From positions 9,176,001-9,240,000 of the forward strand of contig OZ281494.1 of the NCBI GenBank assembly GCA_965637545.1: a DNA stretch of 64,000 nucleotides. Reading direction: 5' to 3'. This stretch comes from Phallusia mammillata (lineage: Eukaryota). The notes beneath the pieces were generated by a model, which was not told where the DNA came from, made no database searches, and was given only the letters and a program-made list of their open reading frames with translations. Positions 199 to 58,800 of this stretch are shown here, in pieces (position 1 is the first letter of the stretch; each line of letters opens with the position of its first letter). The position numbers were made by a program, and so were the translations under genes.

Positions 199-1157
199 AT
201 GGCAAATACCTGGATTTGTGCCGTGGCGATGGTTGCTCTATGCTCACGAATGTGTAGTGCTCAAGGATCATGGGATTCCTATGTATTGCAAGCTTATAAT
301 ATGGCCGATCAAAATGTCACTGCAGTAGAAATTTTTGGTTGTAATACAGGGTCTATTTGGGGTTCGTTATACTACCTGAATGATTTTGTTTCCCCTTTCA
401 GAGTTGAGGTGAGTATTTTCGTCTTATTAAAGATGTTTTTACATGAGCTTAGCTGCAGCATTAACAATATTGCATTCATTTGAACCGATGTTTGTTTTTA
501 CAATACTTGCCAAACTTAACAGAAACTGGAAGCAAAAGAGATGTGCAAACACCCAGATTCACTTACACTCAAGGTCGGTGGCACTTTTACCATCCAGAAG
601 CAAAGTACAGACAGTGTTGGAACTTTCATCTACAAAAATGAAAAAAACATATTCGCAGTGTCGATAGGACCAACTTCAGGTAAGAAGAAAAAGATATTAT
701 AAATCAGACTGTGTTTGACTTTACATAATTTTAATTGAACATAATTAACTTTTACAAAAACATAATTTCCAAGCGTTTATACTGGAACCCATGTTAAGGG
801 GCCCCGGTATAGACCCTTCAGTATTCTAGTATCTGGAAGACGACAGAATCACAGTACATAACTGTTTATGACCGAAACAGTTTTACATTTGCATGTTTTA
901 TTTTTTACCTCAAAGCACAAATGAAAAAAAAACTTTTAGACGCAAACGTTTACCTATTTTTATATATTAAAGTGGTCTTATTCTATTTTCTACTTTGCCC
1001 GCTGAAATTGAATTGCATTTAGTTTACAGAAATATAACAACTCTTTGATTTACTTTCAGCTGTTCTTGCTGGTGGCAAAGTGGGCGAAACTGTTATAGGG
1101 TTAGCTGAAAAAGGAGCTAACGTGGTTGAGGAATATCTGCAGTCTTTCGGACTGTAG
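199..1157 (+). CDS. Profilin-like protein A with N-terminal signal peptide (154 aa; exons 199-408, 523-679, 1060-1157)
   Basis: Canonical GT-AG introns (phase 0, phase 1) give an open frame: MANTWICAVAMVALCSRMCSAQG-SWDSYVLQAYNMADQNVTAVEIFGCNTGSIWGS...LTLKVGGTFTIQK...FAVSIGPTSAVLAGG...GANVVEEYLQSFGL*. It matches profilin hallmarks (SWxxYV, G..G.IW, L.xGG.F, C-terminal xxYL.S.GL/Y). The first ~22 aa are hydrophobic and end in C-S-A. TATA-like TATAAA at 121. Confidence 0.85.
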
Positions 1158-2347
1158 ACAATTTTGTGTTGGAAACAAAGAAAAGGAAATTTTAACTGTC
1201 AATTACATAATAATCAAGAGCTTTATTTGTTTATGTTCGGGATTGTTTTCTTTTTGCAAATGTCTATTTGGTTTTCATGGTGCGGAAATTTTGGTTAACG
1301 TCAATTAAACCTACTAAGTTGATCTCGGAACAAAGGCATGGCTGTTGAACGGAATTACTTTTGTAAAGTAAAAATTTACGCGGTTTGTGTTGGCAAACTG
1401 ATCAATATTAGGACAACTGATGCAAAAAGTTACGCTACCAAGGTTCATAAGGCAAAGTTTGCAGATTAAACGATAAAAGTTTTTTCTATCAAGCAAGATT
1501 ACATGATCGTAAAAATTTTCATACCCTATTTTACCTTATGCCAAACTCAAAATAAACTTTATAGTTCAAACCTAAACGCCAAAGTGTATTAAACCTTAAA
1601 TGACCAGATATTCTGTGGACACAACTGTTAAAACAGCCCAAATATTCCATTGCCACAATCTAACTAACTACCTAAAAGTGGCTGTAGGTGGCGTTTTGTT
1701 TTTGCAGCGAAGGGTTAATATTTTAAAGCAAGATCAAATTGGGCATTGGCAGTACGTAATTGCGGCAGAACAAGAAGTGGGTTACTAATGCTCCACTAGG
1801 CTATAATTTCTGCACAACCGAACAGAAGGTACAATAACGAGACGCCAAGCTTCGCGCAGCTGAGTTCGCAACTCCTTCTATATTTTAACTTCTCCTGTAA
1901 GTAATTTGTTACACCCATTTTTAAAAGTTGTACAAAACAGTTGATTGAACCCGCCAATGAAACAACAATGCCAGGCAGCAAGCTTCGAAAATAATAACAT
2001 TTACCTCCTGTCAGTTACGGTTGCTGAAGAAAATATTGATTGCTTTACCGCTTCCACGCTCATGTAGCGACAAATACAAAACCAGCAAGGTTGCCATTTT
2101 TACTGGTACCAGGCACAAATTCCAAACAAAACACTGAGTGACAAGTTAGAAATGCAGAAAATAGAAACAAAAGAAATGCAGAAAATAGAAAAGGTCTGTG
2201 ATTTTTCGCATAAATAAATCACACTCCAACTTATCTGATGTGTGTTTACAGAAAAGTTAAATAACTGCCAATGACTTGTCAACGGATGATAATTAATCAT
2301 TGAGTGTGCATTGTGGTACAGAAAAAACATCGCATAGGTTTTTTTCA

Positions 2348-2950
2348 ATGGCAAAAATGGCTCGACGATATTAATGCACGACAAACTTTCCCACCCACAT
2401 CCATCATCGATCATATTTATAAACTATACGCCGGCAACGTCCATCATCGATCAAATTTAAACTCGGTGGCACTTTTGCATTTAAATGACAAATGCAACTG
2501 ATAAGACTTTGGCAAAGAATGTTTTTAGAGTAGGCCCCAAGCTCTTTGGAAGCTTTGTTTGCGCACCAAAATCAATATAATGACCTAAAATACTTTTCGA
2601 TCAGACTTTCAGGAGAGTCATATACTCGAACATTATTTTAACCAGAGCCAAATTGTTAATCCTTTTAAATGTTTAATTAACGATGTGATGGGATTTATGC
2701 AACGCGCAAATTTTTTACACAGACTTACACGCCTGGGATGAAAAGGGTGTTTGGAACTGACAATCTCAAACTGATCGCGAACGCGAAACATCACTAGAGT
2801 AATATCTGCAACGGAAATAAACCGCTTGTGTGTAGCATGTATGGTAGGGTTGCCATTCGTCAGGATTTTCCCTGACATGTCAGGGAATTTGGTGTTTAAA
2901 TCTGCGTCAGAAGGAAATGTTAAAATGTACTTAAAAGTCAGGAATTTAAG
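2348..2950 (+). pseudogene. Decayed third copy of the signal-peptide profilin-like gene
   Basis: 2190-2350 aligns with the upstream region of gene B (6020-6215), and ATGGCAAA matches the start of gene A. 2428-2490 translates IRRQRPSSIKFKLGGTFAF (gene B exon 2: LLRQHPSSITFELGGSFTF), followed by a frameshift/stop. Most of exon 1 and the exon-2 donor are missing. An exon-3-like piece follows an AG at 2835 (ACMVG...ASEGNVKMYLKVRNL vs ...AADKGVEYLKLIGL). Confidence 0.7.
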
Positions 2951-3487
2951 AAAAAATACATATGTATACTATGAAATTAATGTACCAACGGAGAAAGTTT
3001 CTAGTAGTTAGCTACAACCGCGTCTATACCATAAAACGTAAAGAAGTAAACTGGCGGCGCGCAGGTTAACGTACCTGTTACTGTTTGGTGTGTGTGCGCG
3101 CGTAACAATACCTGTTTGTTACTAGATGTTTAACAATATGCGTTAAATACACAAATAAAAATCCGCGTCTCAAGAAAACACAGCATTCGATGCTACATGA
3201 GAACGTGGGAAATTTCATTTCCGTAACTGTGTACCTAACATGCAGGGAACTAACTAACAATTAAAGTCCAATGCGTGAGACATAAAAACATTTTTAAAGT
3301 GGCATTTTTCTTCAAATTTTAAATGGTCCTTGTGACTCCCATTTACTAACCAGAAGCCTACGCAGAAAGTAATTGACAAGGATCAGAGTATCGTATGTAA
3401 TGTTTTCTCGTGTCGCCGTCCGTGTGACTTCCGAATATTCGAATTTATTCCGGAATAGAAGTGTTTGGATCGCAAAAATGGTTAACG

Positions 3488-3853
3488 CAGCGGTTCTCAA
3501 ACTGGGGTCCGCGGTCCTTAAGGACATTTTGCGGGGATCTCGAAAAGGTGGAAGTAATTCTATATTCTTATTTGGCGTCAGTTTGTGCAACTGGATAAGT
3601 TGAAATCAAAGTGAAAGTGAAAATCAACCGTCTCCATTGTTAAACAAAAGGCTTTATTGCATCACAACTAACAAAATGCAATTGTTCGCGCACAATTGTA
3701 ATGTTTTTTGTCTTGTCTGTGATGTCAAATTTGGATCATTGTTATGCGCAATTTTGCATAACTAGCTAAAATCCTGCAATCAACTTTCGTTTTTCTGAAA
3801 TACACATTCAGACTTACGTTAACACATTTAGACTTAAAGTTTGAGAAAAACTG
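3488..3853. mobile_element. hAT-type MITE
   Basis: TIR cagcggttctcaaact / agtttgagaaaaactg (13/16); 8-bp TSD ggttaacg / ggttcacg. Confidence 0.65.
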
Positions 3854-5060
3854 GGTTCACGCAACTGAGATAAATTTTGTCAGGGATTGTGTTTCATAAA
3901 ATATGGTAACCCTAATGTATGGTGCATCACAACCTACGTGCAATAGTGGTAATTTTGATAAATACATTATTTGATACATTAGGTTTTACATAATTTGTAA
4001 AACATTATCCGCTAACTATCGCCAGAGATCTAATCTCCACATAAATAAACCATACCGTGGTGTAGGTACACCTGCCAGCGTGGCTAAATAGCACCTTTTG
4101 AAAAGAACATATTTGGACCAGATTATGGAATTGTTTGGGGATCGTATTACCCCAATGTTGGAACAAGGCCATTTTGGAGTTGATGTAAGGTAAGGTTAAT
4201 TATATGCTTCTTAATTTGGTTTAAGTTGATTCAAAGTGTTGTTCTAAATACTATCCACAAATTTTTTTTTAAAAAAACACAAACCATGTTTTAAAATAAA
4301 TCCCATGCATTGCACGACTACAGGCTCAGGAAAAACAACTAAGTTTCTTAATCGCAATGTCATTTCGAAAAAGAAGAGTGCACAATAAAATCTTGAAAAA
4401 CGCAGCGCGTTTCGGGTTGCAAAAGTTAAATTTGTTTTAAGAGTAAAGCACAGAAAAAAGTACGGCCTGTAAGTTTTAGATGCCTGCGTTTTCTGGTGAA
4501 TCAGTTTGCATATTTTCGAAGTCGTTTCTGGTGAGTTAAGTTTTACAGTGCATTGAATTAAATTACAGGTTTTCTTGTTGGGGCAGCAGGAAAATTCGTG
4601 AAACACTTAAAGACCTAAAATGATAAATTTTCCTTTGAAAGAATTTGTACACCGATATAGGCCTACCCTACATGATCCAGATTTTTTTAATTGAGAACCT
4701 TGTTTAAATGTAGTCGCAAACGTTTTGAGCAAATTAAGGCAGTTTTCTGTTTCGTTTATCATAAGTAAACGTGAAAAAGAACTAGCATATTTTGTGTGTA
4801 AGCTGTATAGAAATAACTTAATTTAAGCTATTTATTTGACACCGCTTTAAAGGTTCTCCCGCCGCATGGCTGCAGGCAGTCGGATAAAAGCGCCAATTTC
4901 AAAAACGGTCATAACATTCGAAAAACAAGATGTAAAGACCTGAAATTTGCAGGAGTACTAAATATGAAAGCAAATTATGAAACCATATCAGAAAAAATTG
5001 CAAAAGAGTAAAAAACATGTAAATTAAACGTAAATAGCTGGAAATTCTATATAAATGGAT

Positions 5061-5405
5061 GTCGCGTAACAGTGTTTTATTCTAGAAAGGTGTTGGTAGG
5101 TCGTTATGACGGTCAGCGGATCGTAGCTTTGAAGATTGCCGTCGATAAGGTCTGAAGTTTGAAGTCCAATAACTTTTGTTTGACAAATAAGTAGTTAATG
5201 AAATTTGGGATTAACACAGTTGCATACCCTATTATAATAGGTATTATTGATAATTATCAATAAATGCTGTAAATTTCATAAAAATCGAGGTCGCGTAACA
5301 GTGTTTTATTTTAGGAAGGTGTTGGTTTGTCGTCATGACAGGCAGCGGCTTGTGGCCTTAGGGAAAGCCGTCGATAAGTTCGTAAGGATCATAACTTTTG
5401 TTAGA
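5061..5405. repeat. Diverged direct repeat, two ~115-bp units ~230 bp apart
   Basis: gtcgcgtaacagtgttttatt...gccgtcgataag...ataacttttgtt occurs at 5061 and 5290; probably internal repeats of a non-autonomous DNA transposon. Confidence 0.7.
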
Positions 5406-6217
5406 TTAAGTACTTCATCAGATAGTACCTCAGATTTTTATCTCTCTCGTTTTTCAATATTGCTGCCTCGTCTTCCGTATATATGAATCGTAACAGTTTG
5501 GAGTAGAACACCACACCGTGTGGTTCGCGTTTACGTTGTAGATCGCTGTATTTCATGTCTCTATGCGTATACACAAAGCTTTATCTAGTCTCTTGCTAAA
5601 AATTTCTTATCATATAAAATCCAGTGGCGTAGTACTTTAGTTAAGGATAGACAACTAAACAAAACACAACTCACCGGCGTCTGTATCAGACTTTGGACTT
5701 CATGGATCAGACTTTAGACTTTTAATTCAAACATTTTACCATATGCAATTGTGATGACGTATTTTATTTTGTTGCAACGTTTTAAACGACTTTTCGCACA
5801 TAACTGTTTACAACTACGGTTCAGCACATAGTTGGCGTTTTCGCGTGTAGGCTACGTGTAAACATTTTTTTTCTCATCTTAATGTCGTGATCAACCCCTA
5901 TATAAGCCAAGCGTTTCTTTAACTCAAATCAGTTTTTAAAGTTAAGTTTAAAGTTTACCGTTTTACAATTTAAAGTTAAGTCTATTTGTAAAACAAGAAA
6001 AAGGCGGGTAGAGAAAAAAGTACATGATTTTCGCATCAATAAATCACTCTCAAACTCTAACGAAAGATACAGCAATTCTTCAGTGCGCAACGAAAAGCAT
6101 CATATGTGCTTACAGAAAGGTTAAATATTTAGATACGTATTGTCGGCAATTCATAACTACCGTGTGTGCATTAAGGTGCATCTGAATCATCGTATAGGTT
6201 TTTAAACAACGAAAAAT

Positions 6218-6979
6218 ATGTGGGTTAATGTCGTAACGATGATGGTCTTTTGCTCACAACTCGTAGCAGGTAGTTGGGATGCTCACGCGGAAGCTATTAT
6301 GAGATCCAACAAGAAATCTCTAATTCTAGTCCAGATATTGGGTCCTGATGGTGGAAACGTTTGGGGTTCATGGTCTCCAAGCTCGGAACCATGTGTTTTG
6401 AGACCTGATGTAAGTTTTTAGTGTGTTTGTTAATGCAGATTCAGAGTGAAATAGAGACTATGGCATACCATACCTAAAAGCATTATTGCATGAAATTTTT
6501 AAACAAAACTACGTTAATAGTGAACAAATTCACGATTTGGTTCACGATTGCAGGCACAGGAAATTTCCCTGCTACGCCAACATCCTTCAAGTATTACATT
6601 TGAACTGGGTGGCTCGTTTACATTCATAACGGACGTGGAAACAGAACAAACAGGAAGAGTAATATCTGTTTACAGCAATCCCAAATACTGGATCGCAGTA
6701 TCATTTGGAACAAACTCAGGTAAAAAGGAATATGCAGTACAGAGTTAAGAGTTTTTATAGTTTAGTATCGTCACTAAATTACGTCCTGTCATATTTGCAT
6801 GTCTCTCTGTCGAAGTGCGTTGGTTTGCACAAGGTGGACCTCATTTCTGGTTGGTTAATTCTAACACAGTATTGAATGAATTATCAGGTGTTCTAGTGGG
6901 GGTTGAACAAGCCTTTAGGAACCAAGCAGAAAGAGCAGCAGACAAGGGTGTGGAATATCTAAAATTAATTGGCTTGTAA
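6218..6979 (+). CDS. Profilin-like protein B with N-terminal signal peptide (149 aa; exons 6218-6409, 6554-6719, 6888-6979)
   Basis: Same intron phases (0, 1) as gene A. MWVNVVTMMVFCSQLVAG-SWDAHAEAIMRSNKKSLILVQILGPDGGNVWGS...ITFELGGSFTFI...WIAVSFGTNSGVLVGV...AERAADKGVEYLKLIGL*. ILGPDGGNVW closely matches the profilin (I/V)G.DG.VW motif. An alternative in-frame acceptor at 6869 would add 6 aa. AATAAA near 7151. Confidence 0.85.
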
Positions 6980-8178
6980 TTTTGCATTGATATAATTTGT
7001 ACATGGATTTTGCGTTGGTACCAGATATTGGGAGTAGTGAACTAATCCGATACGTCGTAAAAAATAAAAACTCTTGAACACTTAACTAATAAGCAAATTA
7101 TTTCCATACACACACTTAACCGGCTGCTTTGTTGTTATATGTACAAATGCAAATAAACTGTACACAGCTTACTCTAGACTCTGGATTGCTTGTATTGTTA
7201 CCTGCAGATTATACAGAGTGGTTTTCAAGCAAAAAAATGCGTGATCTTTTTGGTGACCATTTTCAAAAATCGTAAAAAGCACGGAACCTTTCAAAAATTA
7301 TAAAAGAAAACAATGTAGCCTACGACAAACGTGTCAGTAAGATAGTTTATGCTAACCACTGCACAATAATAACGATAGTCAACCCAGCACAACAACAAGT
7401 GCAGGCTATAGGCTAAGCGTTTGTGTTTTTGCACCCTTCTTTATCGTCATAGCATTAAAAAAATACATGTACCTCACTTTTGTGTTCATGCAAGAACAAA
7501 GTTTTTTTTGCTCGTTTAGTGTTTTAATGCAAGAACAATTTGGGTACTGACATCCCGTATGTCAACAACAAAACAACTGATGACATGCCAGGCCAAATTG
7601 TAAAATTCGGTGCAATAACGAAATGCCAAGTTTCCTAGAGCTAAGTTCGCAATAAATCACGCAGAATGTCATCAGCACAAGAAGCTGATTATAAACACAA
7701 TCTATTTTAAAAACAAAGCGACAAAGCTAATGCGCAGAGAGGAATTAAAGGCAGAACGATTATGCGTCTGCATCACACATGTTGGAGTGAGCCTGCTTAT
7801 TTAATGCCTTCAAACGCATTGACAGCAAAATGTTTTTACATATGTGTGCATAATTCTACAGATTGTTTATGAACATAAAGGTTATAAAAGTTGAGGGCCT
7901 TACTGCTGTTTCATATTATCAAAGTTATTATTTGGATGCTGTAAAGTGTAAACCTGTGTTGAATGCAATCGATGATTTTCAAGTTCATTGGCATCCGAAG
8001 CGCAGAGCAATTTTTGAATATTTCCTGTAAGTGATTTGTTACACCCATTAGGTGAAATTGCACAAACCAGTTGATTAAATTACCCGCCTTCCAATCGTTT
8101 ATTGTTGATAGTTGTGGGAGATGCTAAATTTATACGCACGTGATGCGTCGTCAAACTCAAGCAGTAAAACCACTAAAT

Positions 8179-54630: not shown

Positions 54631-55857
54631 CGGTATCCTTCAAAGCTTGGTGCATCTGTATCCATTGCTTACTACAGCATAAAATTGCGTTACGCACATT
54701 TATATTGTTTGGTTTTAATTTGAGTTACACGCACGTTCATACTGCTTGGTACACTTTTATTGCTTTATGCTCGCTTTGAAATTTCTTAGTGTACATTTGT
54801 TTTCTACCTCTCTATGCGCCCAAAACTGTCTTGTGCACTTGTTCATCACTTGGACGTTATTCCTGTCGCTTGGTGCAAATTTACATCGGCTGATGCTCCC
54901 TTATATCGCTTTATGTAGATTAAACTTTTTAGTTGGTACACATGAAAATTGCTTGATGCACACCTATACATTTCGCTTGGAGTTTCTATATTTTGCTTGT
55001 TGGGCCCGTATTGGTGCCAGCAGAGGCAGAGTAGGATTACAAAAGTAGGGGAATTTTGGCGAAAAATCTGTGTCCGGAAATAATTTTCAAAAACACATTT
55101 ATTGCTTGGGACTTTAGCGTCAGTAGCCTAACCAACAGTAGTTTTCACAATTCTTTTTATGGGGGACTTGAAGGTTTATATTATAACTGTTGTCTGTGCT
55201 GATTTTGATGCACGCTATTCATGCGAAACAATGCGTATTGATAGCTAACAATACTCTGTTAAAAGGACCGGATCTTGTAAAACTTTTTGTTTCGTAACTT
55301 ATTTAGAAGCAAAACTGCGTTTTTTTTCTCTATTATAGTAAAAATATTGTATCAAAAACGACACAGTTTGAGTTGACAACGTGTAACAACATGCCAACTT
55401 TGGTGTCACCAAAGATGTTTATTAAAAACCGTCCGGAATTTTGCTTTTGCAGACATGGCAAGTGGCAACCCTAACCAAAAGTCTGCATAAACATATATGC
55501 ACACACATTCATACTGTGGCAAAAAATTGATGTAAACACAACCTCATAAAGGTGCATCAAGTATTTAAGAAGTCTCTTTAATTTGTTTGTTGTAAATTTA
55601 AATCGTTTGGTCCCTTTAATACCGTTACGCATCAGTGATTTATTATTTCTCTGACGTAGGCGTTCCTGTTTTGTATGTTTTGCCATTGTTGTGACGAAAA
55701 TGATGCTGGTTGATTGCAAATTGCTATGTAACAGTTTTATGTTGACGGTAAGAAATCGTCGTTTTTAACGTATTTGTTGAGCAGATTGATGGTTGTGCTA
55801 TGGGCTAACGACCTATAACGTTATCGCTTTTGATTAGATTTCAGATTTGTTTTTGTG

Positions 55858-58800
55858 ATGTCGTGGTTAAATAACTTGACAGACTTAGCTGGCAAGGCAG
55901 AGTCGTTGCTAAACAACATTGACCAGTCTGCAGCAGTTGCTATTTCTAAAGCAGCTGACCAAAATGAAGACAAATTGCAATTGCAACCACCACCTCCTGC
56001 GACAGAAAGCATTAGACAACAAGTACCTGCTGCGAAACCAGAAAAAGTTACCAAAAATGTACCTCTACCTGAAGACAAACCTATCATTGGTGTTAAGACA
56101 CCAGGCAAAAAGAGGGAAACCAGCTATGCCAAGGACGCACCTTCTGATGATGCTTTGTTTAAGTTCCTAAACAGTGACAAAAAGATTTCTAGGTCACGTA
56201 CACAAAACACAACAATACCACCAGGAAATAAAAAGCTTGGGACTCCACAATCAGCTGCAAATTCAGCCAGCAGTCAAGTGAAACTAACTGGAGACAAAAA
56301 GGAACAATCAAACCAACCGCCTGGTATACCAACTTCCTTGGAAATATCACGAAGCTCTAGTTTTGACTCAGACCGATCAAAATTAAGTGGAAGAATTTCT
56401 GGAGATAATGGCTCAAGCTCATCCGAACACCATGAGACAATTTCAGAAGCAGGTAAAATTTTAACCACATTTGACAAAAATTACAAGCTCTTTATAAAAA
56501 GCATGGAGCCATAAGCTTCAGACAGTGCACACTGTTTCAACCTCTAAGTTATTTTTAGTTACTCTTAACAAACGGAATTGCAGTAATGTGGCCACACTAG
56601 CCTTTGCAGTCAATGCATTTCGCCAATTGCAGTGATGAGCCTTAAAGGCCAAGACAGTGAGCACTGTCTGTAGCTAACCTTGACAAGCTCTTGTTTGAAA
56701 AAATATTTTTTTGCTACATTCTATACCACAACATGGTCTTGATATGCTTGTGTACATTTTTTCAATGCAATATTAATACAGATGTTATAACACTTCCAAC
56801 GGACTCGACTGCATCTGAAAGTGAGTTTGAAATGGTTGGAAGTACACCGACAGCATCATCAGATCGTGATACCCCAGAAAGCGGGGAAGCAGTATTACCA
56901 AGTGTATCTTCATCACATGATCTTGCAGTGGAGAACCGCCTTCTAAAAAATGAGATGTCATCACTACATCAGGAGTTGACTCATATGAATGCCAGGAACA
57001 AAAAAATCAAAACAGGTTGATAAATATACTACATTCACCCAAGGTTCTTAACCAGGGGGTGCATAAATTCGTATGGGGTGCCATACCTGTGCCTTGTGGT
57101 AAAAGGATAAATCACTGGAATAGCCTACACAACCAGTGTCTTATTACCAGCGGCACTAATGAGACCTTATGGGTAAAATTTGTGTGATTTGTCTGTAGGT
57201 TGATAAGTGTTGTGGGAGTTGATAATATCCTGGTCTGTAAAAGTACAGCAATGCATTTTGAGTACAACTGTGTTGAGCAGTGATCTACCAATTTCAAAGT
57301 TTTAAACTGCATTGAAAGGTTTAATGTTAAACAAATAAAGTGCTGTTGTGTTATTAAAAACAAATAAACCAATGTTTAGTTCAAAACAAACTGAAATTAC
57401 TGACAGAGTTTAAAAATGTTTTTAGACTTGCAAAGCTCAAATGTTGAGCTTCGCAACCGGTGTGATGATCTCTGTGAGGAGTTAAAGGTCAAAAGTACGC
57501 AACTATCAGCATTGCAAATGAAGCTAAGGGAATCTGAAAACCTGCTAATCATGGAACAGGAAAATTCAGAAAGAGTACAAAACAACCTGGAACGGTTTGT
57601 TTGTCCAATATCAGTAAATTTCTATAAGACTAAATTGAAAAAACTTCTTTTTGGTATGATCAAGTTTTGTGGTATGTACAAAGTTTAAAAATCTCATTGT
57701 TTTCAGGTTACAGCTTGATCAAAGTGAAGGCTCTGACATGCATGGACGGGCCATTGATGAGCTGAGGTCAAGACTTGAAGAAGCTGAACATAACTTGGCA
57801 CTGGAAAAAAGAGCACACAGGTTTATAAAGATCAATATCAGTCGCCTTAAAGCCTGCATTCGGTTTTATGTTGACGAAATGTCTTCACACATTCTTTGAA
57901 CAATATATATATACCTAGTTAACAGCAGAGTACTGTTTAGGTTATAGGACAGTCACTGAACTGCATTCAGTGTTGTGAGTCATCGATTTTAGCATGTCGA
58001 TATGTCATCACATGAACCATATTTTAGCCCAATCCTGGTTCATATTTTCACCATACATGGTGTATACTACTTTCAAATAGGTGTTTGTGGAATTGTTTTT
58101 TTTATTGCTATTACTTGTATTGCAAAAATCGGGTTTGGAAAACGTTTTAACTCTTGAACTTGTTGTACAATATCCAGATAACAGCTGTTCTATAAAAGTT
58201 AAACCCTGTTCCCAGCTGTAAACAAAATGTATGACATTCTTTGCGTACATTACTGTGTACTGCTAGTGCTATTTACCTGCATCAATTATTCATACATACT
58301 TTGGTTTTGCTTTTCCACAATTCAACACTTATGGTGGCACAAAAACGACAACCCAACAAGTGCAATTGGACTATCACAGACATAAGTACTGGTCTTACTA
58401 GTGTCTTGTTGTTTGTACAGGGTGAATAGGGTTGACAAGATCAGGTAACAAATAACGCCGTTTCTAGTGGACTCAATGTGGTGTGCTTTTTTCTGTTTAA
58501 AATTTAAACTGGTTTGCTGACTGCCAGTGAATGGTTGTAGGCCGTAGAGGGTTTATTGAAAAGTTAAACCAGTAGTGGTAAATGACATTGTGTTTTTGTG
58601 TATCTAGTGAGGCAAGACAGGAGGTACTGCAAAATAGAACCCGTCAGGATTCAGAGACAAAAAAGATTGTTGAGTCTTACCAAAAGTCGGAAAGAGATCG
58701 CCAATTGGACAAAAGTAAGTTTGATGTTTACAATGTGATTGGGGCTAAAACAATTGCCCTGTGTTTTTTTGTTCAAAGGAAGCATGTCCTAGAAAAGCTT

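Follow-up and report, generated by a model that had tools for sequence, protein, structure and literature searches.

Two tandem paralogous genes, A and B, lie on the forward strand of the window (the 64,000-nucleotide stretch of DNA analysed here). Sequence comparison supports that they are profilin derivatives, and each begins with a leader that looks like a signal peptide. The explanation we favor, and consider probable, is that a profilin gene was duplicated, that both copies inherited a signal-peptide leader, and that they encode an exported protein binding proline-rich partners. The signal-peptide function, the retained fold, and the ligand of A and B are what we infer from sequence. The exons are as follows.

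199..408, + strand: gene A exon 1, with the leader at 199-267, the first 47 mature residues, and an N-V-T sequon; the donor GT is at 409.
523..679, + strand: second exon of gene A, 157 nt, which ends in phase 1, with the AG acceptor at 521-522 and the GT donor at 680-681.
1060..1157, + strand: gene A exon 3, with the stop codon, encoding a C-terminal amphipathic helix with an E-Y-L motif.
6218..6409, + strand: gene B exon 1, with the leader at 6218-6271 (18 aa) and the first 46 mature residues from SW.
6554..6719, + strand: second exon of gene B, 166 nt, which ends in phase 1; RNA contigs from four runs contain the joint 6409>6554.
6888..6979, + strand: gene B exon 3, with the stop codon; the joint 6719>6888 (reported as 6715>6884, with the cut shifted by +4) is found in four runs.

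Gene A spans 199-1157 and encodes 154 aa, and gene B spans 6218-6979 and encodes 149 aa, both on the + strand with three exons. All four introns are of the GT..AG type, with phases 0 and then 1 in both genes. If cleavage occurs just before the SW motif, the mature part is 131 aa in each protein. The GT-AG gene models and these lengths bear out the earlier note, which had described two intact three-exon genes with mature parts of about 131 aa. The two proteins share 33% identity (blastp E 7e-22). The sequon and two mature-region cysteines ascribed to gene A are present, at residue 39 and at residues 48 and 78, respectively; gene B has one mature cysteine, at residue 59. A conserved disulfide pair is absent from A and B, and the single mature cysteine of B is unusual for small secreted proteins.

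Profilin membership was not found at the HMM level. Pfam gave no profilin match for the six exon translations of A and B at E up to 10. Local HMMs built from 34 and 143 validated profilins scored the whole spliced proteins at 9.0-10.3 bits for A and 3.0-3.4 bits for B, far below the 25-bit cut-off of the Pfam profilin family (PF00235). A Pfam-type HMM check, as had been proposed for these genes, came out negative, at about 3-10 bits. Nor did any profilin come up when the PDB was searched by hmmsearch with profiles of exons 1 and 2. For six large ORFs from other parts of the window, Pfam returned no match.

Profile-profile comparison gave a different picture. The alignment of the mature parts of A and B was compared by hhalign with the 34 Pfam-validated profilins, and the two profiles align end to end over 116 columns (1-130 versus 2-125) with a probability of 95% and a P value of 3e-8 (range 3-5e-8); a profile of 143 profilins gave the same result. 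Across the 116 aligned positions, A and B are 22-30% identical to profilins. The observed score of 49.3 compares with a mean of 12.3 and a maximum of 22.2 for 300 column shuffles and with 12.8 for the reversed sequence, and each of the 152 real non-profilin ORFs stays below 22. Removal of the SW end or of the C-terminal end leaves a score of 36-38. Exon 1 alone aligns to positions 2-32 of the profilin profile (P 2.4e-5) and exon 3 alone to positions 107-125 (P 0.005), both by remote hhalign, and these two matches are collinear and correctly spaced on the profile. Exon 2 alone gave no profilin signal in the same comparison. The signal hence resides in the N- and C-terminal thirds, and the middle third alone is not significant. 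The claim that the profilin signature runs from end to end stands insofar as the full-length alignment is well above chance, and fails for the middle third taken by itself.

Intron positions provide a second line. In the sea-cucumber profilin gene, the one two-intron animal profilin gene used for this comparison, intron 1 comes after codon 37 (phase 0) and codon 95 is interrupted by intron 2 (phase 1). In A and B, intron 2 occupies the alignment column of its sea-cucumber counterpart and shares its phase 1; intron 1 is in phase 0 as in sea cucumber, two columns (codons) later. Plant and fungal profilin genes share intron 1 and not intron 2. Profilin descent is therefore supported by two independent lines, profile-profile homology and shared intron position and phase. 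It was revealed only by these two, as word-based and HMM searches missed it.

These results bear on whether A and B instead form an orphan family, small secreted proteins with no relation to profilin, in which the SW start, the G-G, the Y-L end, and the length of 131 aa arose by chance or convergence. The failure of HMM-level searches and the silent middle third speak for such an origin, as does a weak resemblance of exon 2 to the start of antibody kappa V domains. The last was considered as a candidate identity (immunoglobulin V-set; E 0.006-0.4 against kappa light-chain starts by PDB hmmsearch) and rejected: the Ig-defining Cys and Trp are missing, their positions being occupied by K or D and by I or V, respectively, and 47 mature residues precede exon 2. 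Against the orphan origin stand a profile-profile score far above shuffles, reversed sequence, and real decoys, two independent end matches in the correct order and spacing, and an intron 2 at the exact position and phase of a deuterostome profilin gene. We regard it as improbable.

Relatives of A and B were not found elsewhere. Homologous-protein searches with the gene A exon 1 ORF and with the A and B exon 1 alignment, the latter so that proteins of 149 aa would be covered, yielded no matches, and no relatives were found among 1.84 billion protein representatives. This is in line with the earlier proposal of a lineage-specific family. The exon 2 profile search of the protein representatives returned only eight hits, all of them long proteins, bacterial or repeat proteins, in which many short stretches matched; these were judged spurious. 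In the three of the eight that were checked, Pfam identified Big_7, Kelch-type propeller, and similar repeat domains. Comparison of the exon pieces with the ESM Atlas gave low-score neighbors only. Those of the exon 1 pieces (scores 0.72-0.86) are weak leads, namely neighbors named Lipoprotein and clusters in which trypsin-type peptidase families occur in some members.

We then inspected which profilin features are kept. A and B retain the SW start, the I and W in strands 1 and 2, the G-G before the central strands, and the C-terminal E/D-Y-L helix; Q4 and D8 are lost, and the P-G ahead of the last helix is weakened. A hydrophobic-moment scan detected only the C-terminal amphipathic helix and β periodicity before the G-G. 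We take W3, Y6, W31, and the C-terminal Y-L to be the poly-L-proline groove residues of profilin's N- and C-terminal helices. At these positions, A has W, Y, W, and Y-L, and B has W, H, W, and Y-L. The last residue of both proteins is L, compared with Y or F in most profilins displayed. The Y-G-K-K-G motif, presumably the part of profilin that contacts actin, is 74-91% conserved in the reference set; in its place, A has Y-K-N-E-K and B has Y-S-N-P-K. Scavenging of extracellular actin had been among the roles suggested for these proteins; we read the loss of this mid-domain motif as arguing against it. As the groove aromatics are kept and the YGKKG region has diverged, binding of proline-rich partners appears likelier than control of actin.

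The leader of A has 23 aa (21 if cleaved after C-S-A) and that of B has 18 aa. Both are hydrophobic, with Kyte-Doolittle maxima over nine residues of 2.9 for A and 2.2 for B. A hydrophobic leader of 18-22 aa directly before SW had been described; its hydrophobicity and its position next to SW hold for both genes, and the length needs amending for A. The leaders were read against the rule for signal peptides, namely a hydrophobic core of about 7-15 residues, a polar c-region, small residues at -3/-1, and a total of 15-30 aa. Leader A has an 11-residue core and a predicted C-S-A or A-Q-G site, and leader B has a 10-residue core and a predicted V-A-G site directly preceding SW. By this rule-based reading, both conform in their n/h/c regions and in the small residues at -3/-1; a basic n-region is absent from both, and the h-region of B is only moderately hydrophobic. 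The earlier note took two leaders that differ in sequence but both look like signal peptides as a sign of selection to keep secretion. The leaders are in fact alignable (homologous), and so represent one inherited leader rather than two independent acquisitions.

It is unlikely, in our judgment, that the profilin-derived domain is not released, either because the hydrophobic N-terminus stays uncleaved as a signal anchor or membrane tether or because the protein resides in the lumen of ER or Golgi. The missing basic n-region and cleavage sites that are predicted by rule only would fit such retention. The cores of 10-11 residues are, however, too short to span a membrane, and small residues occupy -3/-1 before SW. 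Direct reading of both proteins, which end in G-L, further shows no KDEL/HDEL-type ending and no second hydrophobic segment.

The leader is obligatory in both genes because no Met is adjacent to SW (23 and 18 residues precede it) and an in-frame stop lies upstream of each ATG. Specifically, gene A has an in-frame TAA at 193-195, just 5' of the ATG, which makes its leader ATG the first AUG by genomic reading alone. In gene B, the in-frame stop is at 6203-6205 in the reference; a variant haplotype has it 15 codons upstream, with no ATG in between. Since SW has no preceding Met, every molecule should be made with the leader. A literature search found no description of a profilin with a signal peptide, and no leader-bearing profilin was found among the best 120 of 1464 profilin matches in the database. 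Six of these 120 are N-extended, and as all six keep M-S-W, their extensions look like read-through of the 5' UTR.

Gene B is transcribed, and its observed mRNA is as follows.

6061..7185, + strand: gene B mRNA, observed extent from RNA contigs, including an 811-nt contig of run X25.

The RNA contigs from four runs show that gene B is spliced exactly as predicted, with the leader ATG included. Its 5' UTR is at least 157 nt long and contains a six-codon upstream ORF at 6104, the only one before 6218, and the leader ATG is the first in-frame AUG of the transcript. The 3' UTR has an AATAAA at 7152-7157. About half of the words of a 901-base stretch of gene B occur in many RNA runs. Gene A was found in no RNA run searched, so the suggested check of ATG and splicing by RNA is positive for B, with both joints seen and the ATG inside the mRNA, and not for A. 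Transcripts starting downstream of the leader ATG, which would speak against secretion, were not seen for B: its mRNA contigs start at 6061, upstream of 6218. Bypass of the leader, from a start further downstream or from another first exon, yielding an ordinary cytosolic profilin-like protein, is accordingly very unlikely. Neither gene has an ATG directly before SW, the next Met of B past the leader is residue 28, within the first helix, and the RNA contigs represent a single isoform that is continuous from 6061 through the ATG.

The stretch between the two genes contains two decayed fragments.

2203..2491, + strand: decayed third copy, in which 2203-2343 matches the 5' region of gene B (6028-6203) collinearly and exon 1 is missing.
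4106..4174, + strand: isolated exon-1-like remnant, a G-P-D..W-G-S stretch followed by a GTAAG-like donor.

The third copy also contains an exon-2-like piece at 2423-2491 that ends in a stop. These fragments, together with the lack of RNA for A and of a homologue elsewhere, would fit A and B being functionless duplicates in decay, left over from a birth-and-death array, with B transcribed as noise. Such decay is unlikely given that the reading frames and all eight splice sites of A and B are intact despite 67% protein divergence and that RNA of B could be assembled from many runs belonging to several studies. Variation in B points the same way. The mature coding sequence has no changes in 393 nt, compared with UTR differences of about 3% (five SNPs and one indel in 206 nt of the 3' UTR), and the leader carries three polymorphisms, T7M, L15F, and A17T, all conservative. 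The variation in leader and mature region supports constraint on B.

The favored explanation can be put as a sequence of steps. A canonical three-exon profilin gene of metazoan type would have been duplicated to give the tandem paralogues A and B, in whose common ancestor exon 1 would have been lengthened at its 5' end by the code for the short hydrophobic leader, most likely a cleavable signal peptide. The profilin-like domain, 131 aa long and acidic, would then enter the ER lumen and leave the cell, in the case of A with one N-glycosylation sequon. The terminal helices retain the aromatics that we take for the poly-proline groove, and the central region with YGKKG has diverged beyond recognition; the most likely activity would be binding of proline-rich extracellular or luminal partners. 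More tentatively, and with somewhat less confidence than doubt, A and B could represent the first family of profilins made for classical secretion, a glycosylatable one with the groove kept and YGKKG lost, which reads proline-rich proteins (ligands of matrix, coat, or immune type) outside the cell or in the lumen in a narrow animal lineage.

If the favored explanation is true, the profilin fold was recruited to the secretory pathway via an obligatory signal-type leader, a clean example of how tandem duplication, followed by lengthening of exon 1 at its 5' end, can give rise to a new secreted protein. It would also be a natural experiment, the poly-proline groove being kept and YGKKG lost, which would imply that the two activities are separable. 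That word-based and HMM searches of billions of proteins missed A and B suggests that further families of this kind go unnoticed.

Profilin is the textbook cytosolic actin-binding protein, present in all eukaryotes and in Asgard archaea. Canonical profilins (PF00235), such as the 126-aa sea-cucumber profilin P0109, resemble A and B in a domain of about 126-131 aa and in three exons; they start with M-S-W and are leaderless, whereas A and B have the obligatory hydrophobic leader of 18-23 aa. Apicomplexan profilin is sensed by Toll-like receptors. Human profilin-1 acts on vascular smooth muscle cells (PMC2963617). Both examples indicate that the profilin domain can have extracellular effects. 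The extracellularly acting profilins known to us have no signal peptide and exit by cell damage or unconventional release; in A and B, by contrast, export would be built into the genes. Asgard archaeal profilins are distant and still regulate actin and bind polyproline; they differ from A and B in being cytosolic and actin-regulating and in having no leader (bioRxiv 10.1101/2020.04.23.051748). The poxvirus profilin homologue of the ectromelia ECTV-PH and vaccinia A42R type reportedly has tropomyosin and a viral inclusion protein as partners. Unlike A and B, it is viral and intracellular, with no leader mentioned in its abstract; like them, it is a diverged profilin paralogue, with partners that are reportedly no longer the classical ones (PMC1964790).

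The two tandem profilin-derived genes, A and B, were modelled on assembled exons of the window sequence, and two fragments resembling them were found between A and B by tblastn.

Features of the array, in window positions
199-408, 523-679 and 1060-1157, plus strand: gene A, exons 1, 2 and 3, 154 aa
2423-2491: exon-2-like piece with a stop at its end
4106-4174: exon-1-like piece, alone, then donor-like GTAAG
6218-6409, 6554-6719 and 6888-6979, plus strand: gene B, exons 1, 2 and 3, 149 aa

All four introns (114-380 bp) are bounded by GT..AG, the first being in phase 0 and the second in phase 1 in both genes, and the two proteins share 33% identity (blastp E 7e-22). Hence, the two intact three-exon genes of the earlier note are borne out. 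A tblastn search of the full 64 kb with the two proteins detected no further intact copy. By blastn, the segment 2203-2343 runs collinear with B's 5′ region, and the exon-2-like piece with its stop comes directly after it. These decayed pieces (2203-2343, 2423-2491, and 4106-4174) indicate that A and B form a small array that also lost copies, and the remnants at 2203-2491 and 4106-4174 suggest birth-and-death turnover. As the ATG of A is only 198 bases from the window start, the array may extend upstream. A short element 3′ of gene A (1885-1950) is found again 3′ of gene B (8017-8080), and the TATA/5′ region of A (124-175) is 77% identical to 7812-7864 over 53 nt. The sequence suggests that the duplicated unit is larger than the genes, or that another decayed copy lies past B. 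Elsewhere in the window, an open exon of 219 aa (55855-56514) has no match in Pfam; its N-terminus is reminiscent of golgin-84.

The leader of A has 23 residues before SW, the pair normally opening a profilin, with a hydrophobic core of 11 residues and, by a rule-based reading, possible -3/-1 sites at C-S-A or A-Q-G. That of B has 18 residues with a core of 10, and V-A-G directly precedes SW. The leader thus stands directly before SW in both genes, as had been claimed. No Met adjoins SW in either gene, and in-frame stops lie upstream of both start codons, two codons before the ATG in A and at 6203 in B (ATG at 6218); therefore synthesis of the profilin-like part always includes the leader, which is obligatory in both genes. 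Neither protein has a second hydrophobic segment or a KDEL-type ending, and by the same rules the leader would be a signal peptide. The leaders were said to differ while both resembling signal peptides; both do fit the rules, but separate origins are not supported, since the leaders can be aligned with each other and hence were inherited from a common ancestor.

Of the words sampled from a 901-base stretch of gene B, about half are present in many RNA runs from several studies, which is the expectation for its spliced mRNA. RNA contigs from four runs, aligned to 5900-7200, join 6409 to 6554 and 6715 to 6884, the latter equalling 6719 to 6888 given a cut ambiguity of +4; both joints are GT..AG and identical to the predicted introns. 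A single contig spans 6061-7185, and AATAAA at 7152-7157 agrees with contig ends at 7168 and 7185. The contigs begin ~155 nt downstream of a TATATAA at 5899-5905. Before the ATG, the 5′ UTR holds only one upstream ORF (6104-6124, six codons), in the frame of the main ORF and ended by stop codons ahead of the main ATG. The proposed RNA check of ATG and splicing thus succeeded for B, with both introns confirmed and the ATG within the mRNA. Gene A was absent from every RNA run listed and was found only in runs that contain the whole stretch, introns included.

The contigs carry two gene B haplotypes, differing at 6201-6204, 6237, 6260, 6266, and 7048-7085, that is, in the 5′ UTR, leader, and 3′ UTR. 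In the variant haplotype, the stop at 6203 gives way to one located 15 codons further upstream, and no ATG intervenes. The three coding differences (T7M, L15F, and A17T) are all conservative and all in the leader; the 393-nt mature coding part has none, and the 206-nt 3′ UTR has five substitutions and one indel. A signal peptide before a constrained domain would give this pattern. Gene B is thus expressed, correctly spliced, and constrained. Two runs labelled organism B, a label for another organism and unrelated to gene B, also carry part of the stretch, with the same leader variants and gene B covered at 95-99% or higher likeness.

Direct searches did not reveal the family. Pfam was blank on the exon translations of A and B, PDB profile searches with exons 1 and 2 returned no profilin, word-based protein searches gave no relative, and HMMER with an exon 2 profile against 1.84 billion protein representatives gave no relative, only spurious repeat proteins. 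In PDB, exon 2 (6554-6718; 523-678) bore a weak likeness (E 0.006-0.4) to antibody kappa V domains in their N-terminal strands, but the Ig Cys and Trp are absent, and we judged the likeness to be a chance resemblance of β-strand pattern. Reference profilins were then fetched from metagenome contigs by the short pattern M-S-W-Q-[AT]-Y-V-D, and 40 complete ORFs were extracted, five of which were verified as PF00235 (E 1e-32 to 1e-48). Against a 34-profilin HMM, the spliced proteins built from the window sequence scored 9.0 bits for A (single-test E 9e-5) and 3.4 bits for B (E 0.005), scores that hint at kinship yet lie far below family level; the anticipated PF00235 match was not obtained. Profile-profile comparison speaks much more clearly for homology.

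hhalign scores against the profilin alignment
A+B mature alignment: 49.3 (Prob 95%, P 3e-8, 116 columns, 1-130 on 2-125)
300 column shuffles: mean 12.3, SD 2.4, maximum 22.2
Reversed sequences: 12.8
Minus first 8 columns: 36.1
Minus last 12 columns: 38.4
Middle only: 16.7, not significant
A alone: 30.1
B alone: 22.0
152 real non-profilin ORFs from metagenome loci: all <22

Five decoy ORFs that scored higher turned out to be profilin fragments, and a 143-sequence profilin profile left the result unchanged. In a separate hhalign comparison of the exon alignments, exon 3 aligned to profile positions 107-125 (P 0.005), exon 1 to 2-32 (P 2.4e-5), and exon 2 gave nothing against the profile. The end-to-end profilin signature therefore holds for the full-length comparison, but not for the middle third.

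Gene structure provides separate evidence. Among fetched loci, the profilin genes of plants and fungi consist of three exons, their introns falling after residues 37-42 and 82-88; in an arthropod-like gene, a single intron follows residue 42. For a deuterostome, we mapped the exons of a sea-cucumber profilin using its genomic locus and mRNA. Its intron 1 is in phase 0, after codon 37, and its intron 2 is in phase 1, after the first base of codon 95, the Ala before V-L-V-G. Placed in the alignment of 143 profilins, A and B have second introns that match sea-cucumber intron 2 in column and phase, with an identical split codon, G|CT, in A and sea cucumber; their first introns are in phase 0 and sit two columns further downstream than the shared intron 1. 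This match, with one animal profilin gene having two introns, is difficult to account for if A and B do not descend from an animal-type profilin gene. The sea-cucumber canonical gene itself (locus L121, 6001-48311) occupies 42 kb for 126 aa, with two introns of ~21 kb each. By score A and B are not PF00235 members, yet profile and gene-structure evidence together marks them as descendants of the family.

A and B are 22-30% identical to canonical profilins over 116 positions. They retain S-W and Y6 (with H instead in B), Ile and Trp in the first strands, Glu following intron 1, G ahead of the central strands, L in V-L-x-G, and E-Y-L in the last helix. In established profilin structures, the poly-proline groove is lined by W3, Y6, W31, and the C-terminal Y-L. 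Neither keeps Q4, D8, or the Y-G-K-K-G motif, the P-G turn that precedes the last helix is mostly gone, and the middle third is unrecognisable as profilin. Both mature proteins have an acidic pI (4.9 and 5.3); A has the two mature Cys reported earlier and B has one, none conserved between them. We propose that the leader would be cleaved as a signal peptide, that the mature part may keep the profilin fold, and that the exported domain could bind proline-rich partners, with actin regulation presumably gone. A role as extracellular actin scavenger seems less likely, since the conserved Y-G-K-K-G motif, which we take to contact actin, is lost.

Leader-bearing profilins, suggested for search elsewhere, did not appear among the best 120 of 1464 database profilin hits: six have an N-terminal extension, and all six retain M-S-W and resemble read-through from upstream. 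The literature searched includes divergent intracellular homologues in poxvirus (PMC1964790), Leishmania, and Asgard archaea (bioRxiv 10.1101/2020.04.23.051748), and describes no profilin with a signal peptide. Human profilin-1 (PMC2963617) and apicomplexan profilin act outside cells, and neither is known to carry a leader; in contrast, A and B carry an obligatory signal-type leader.
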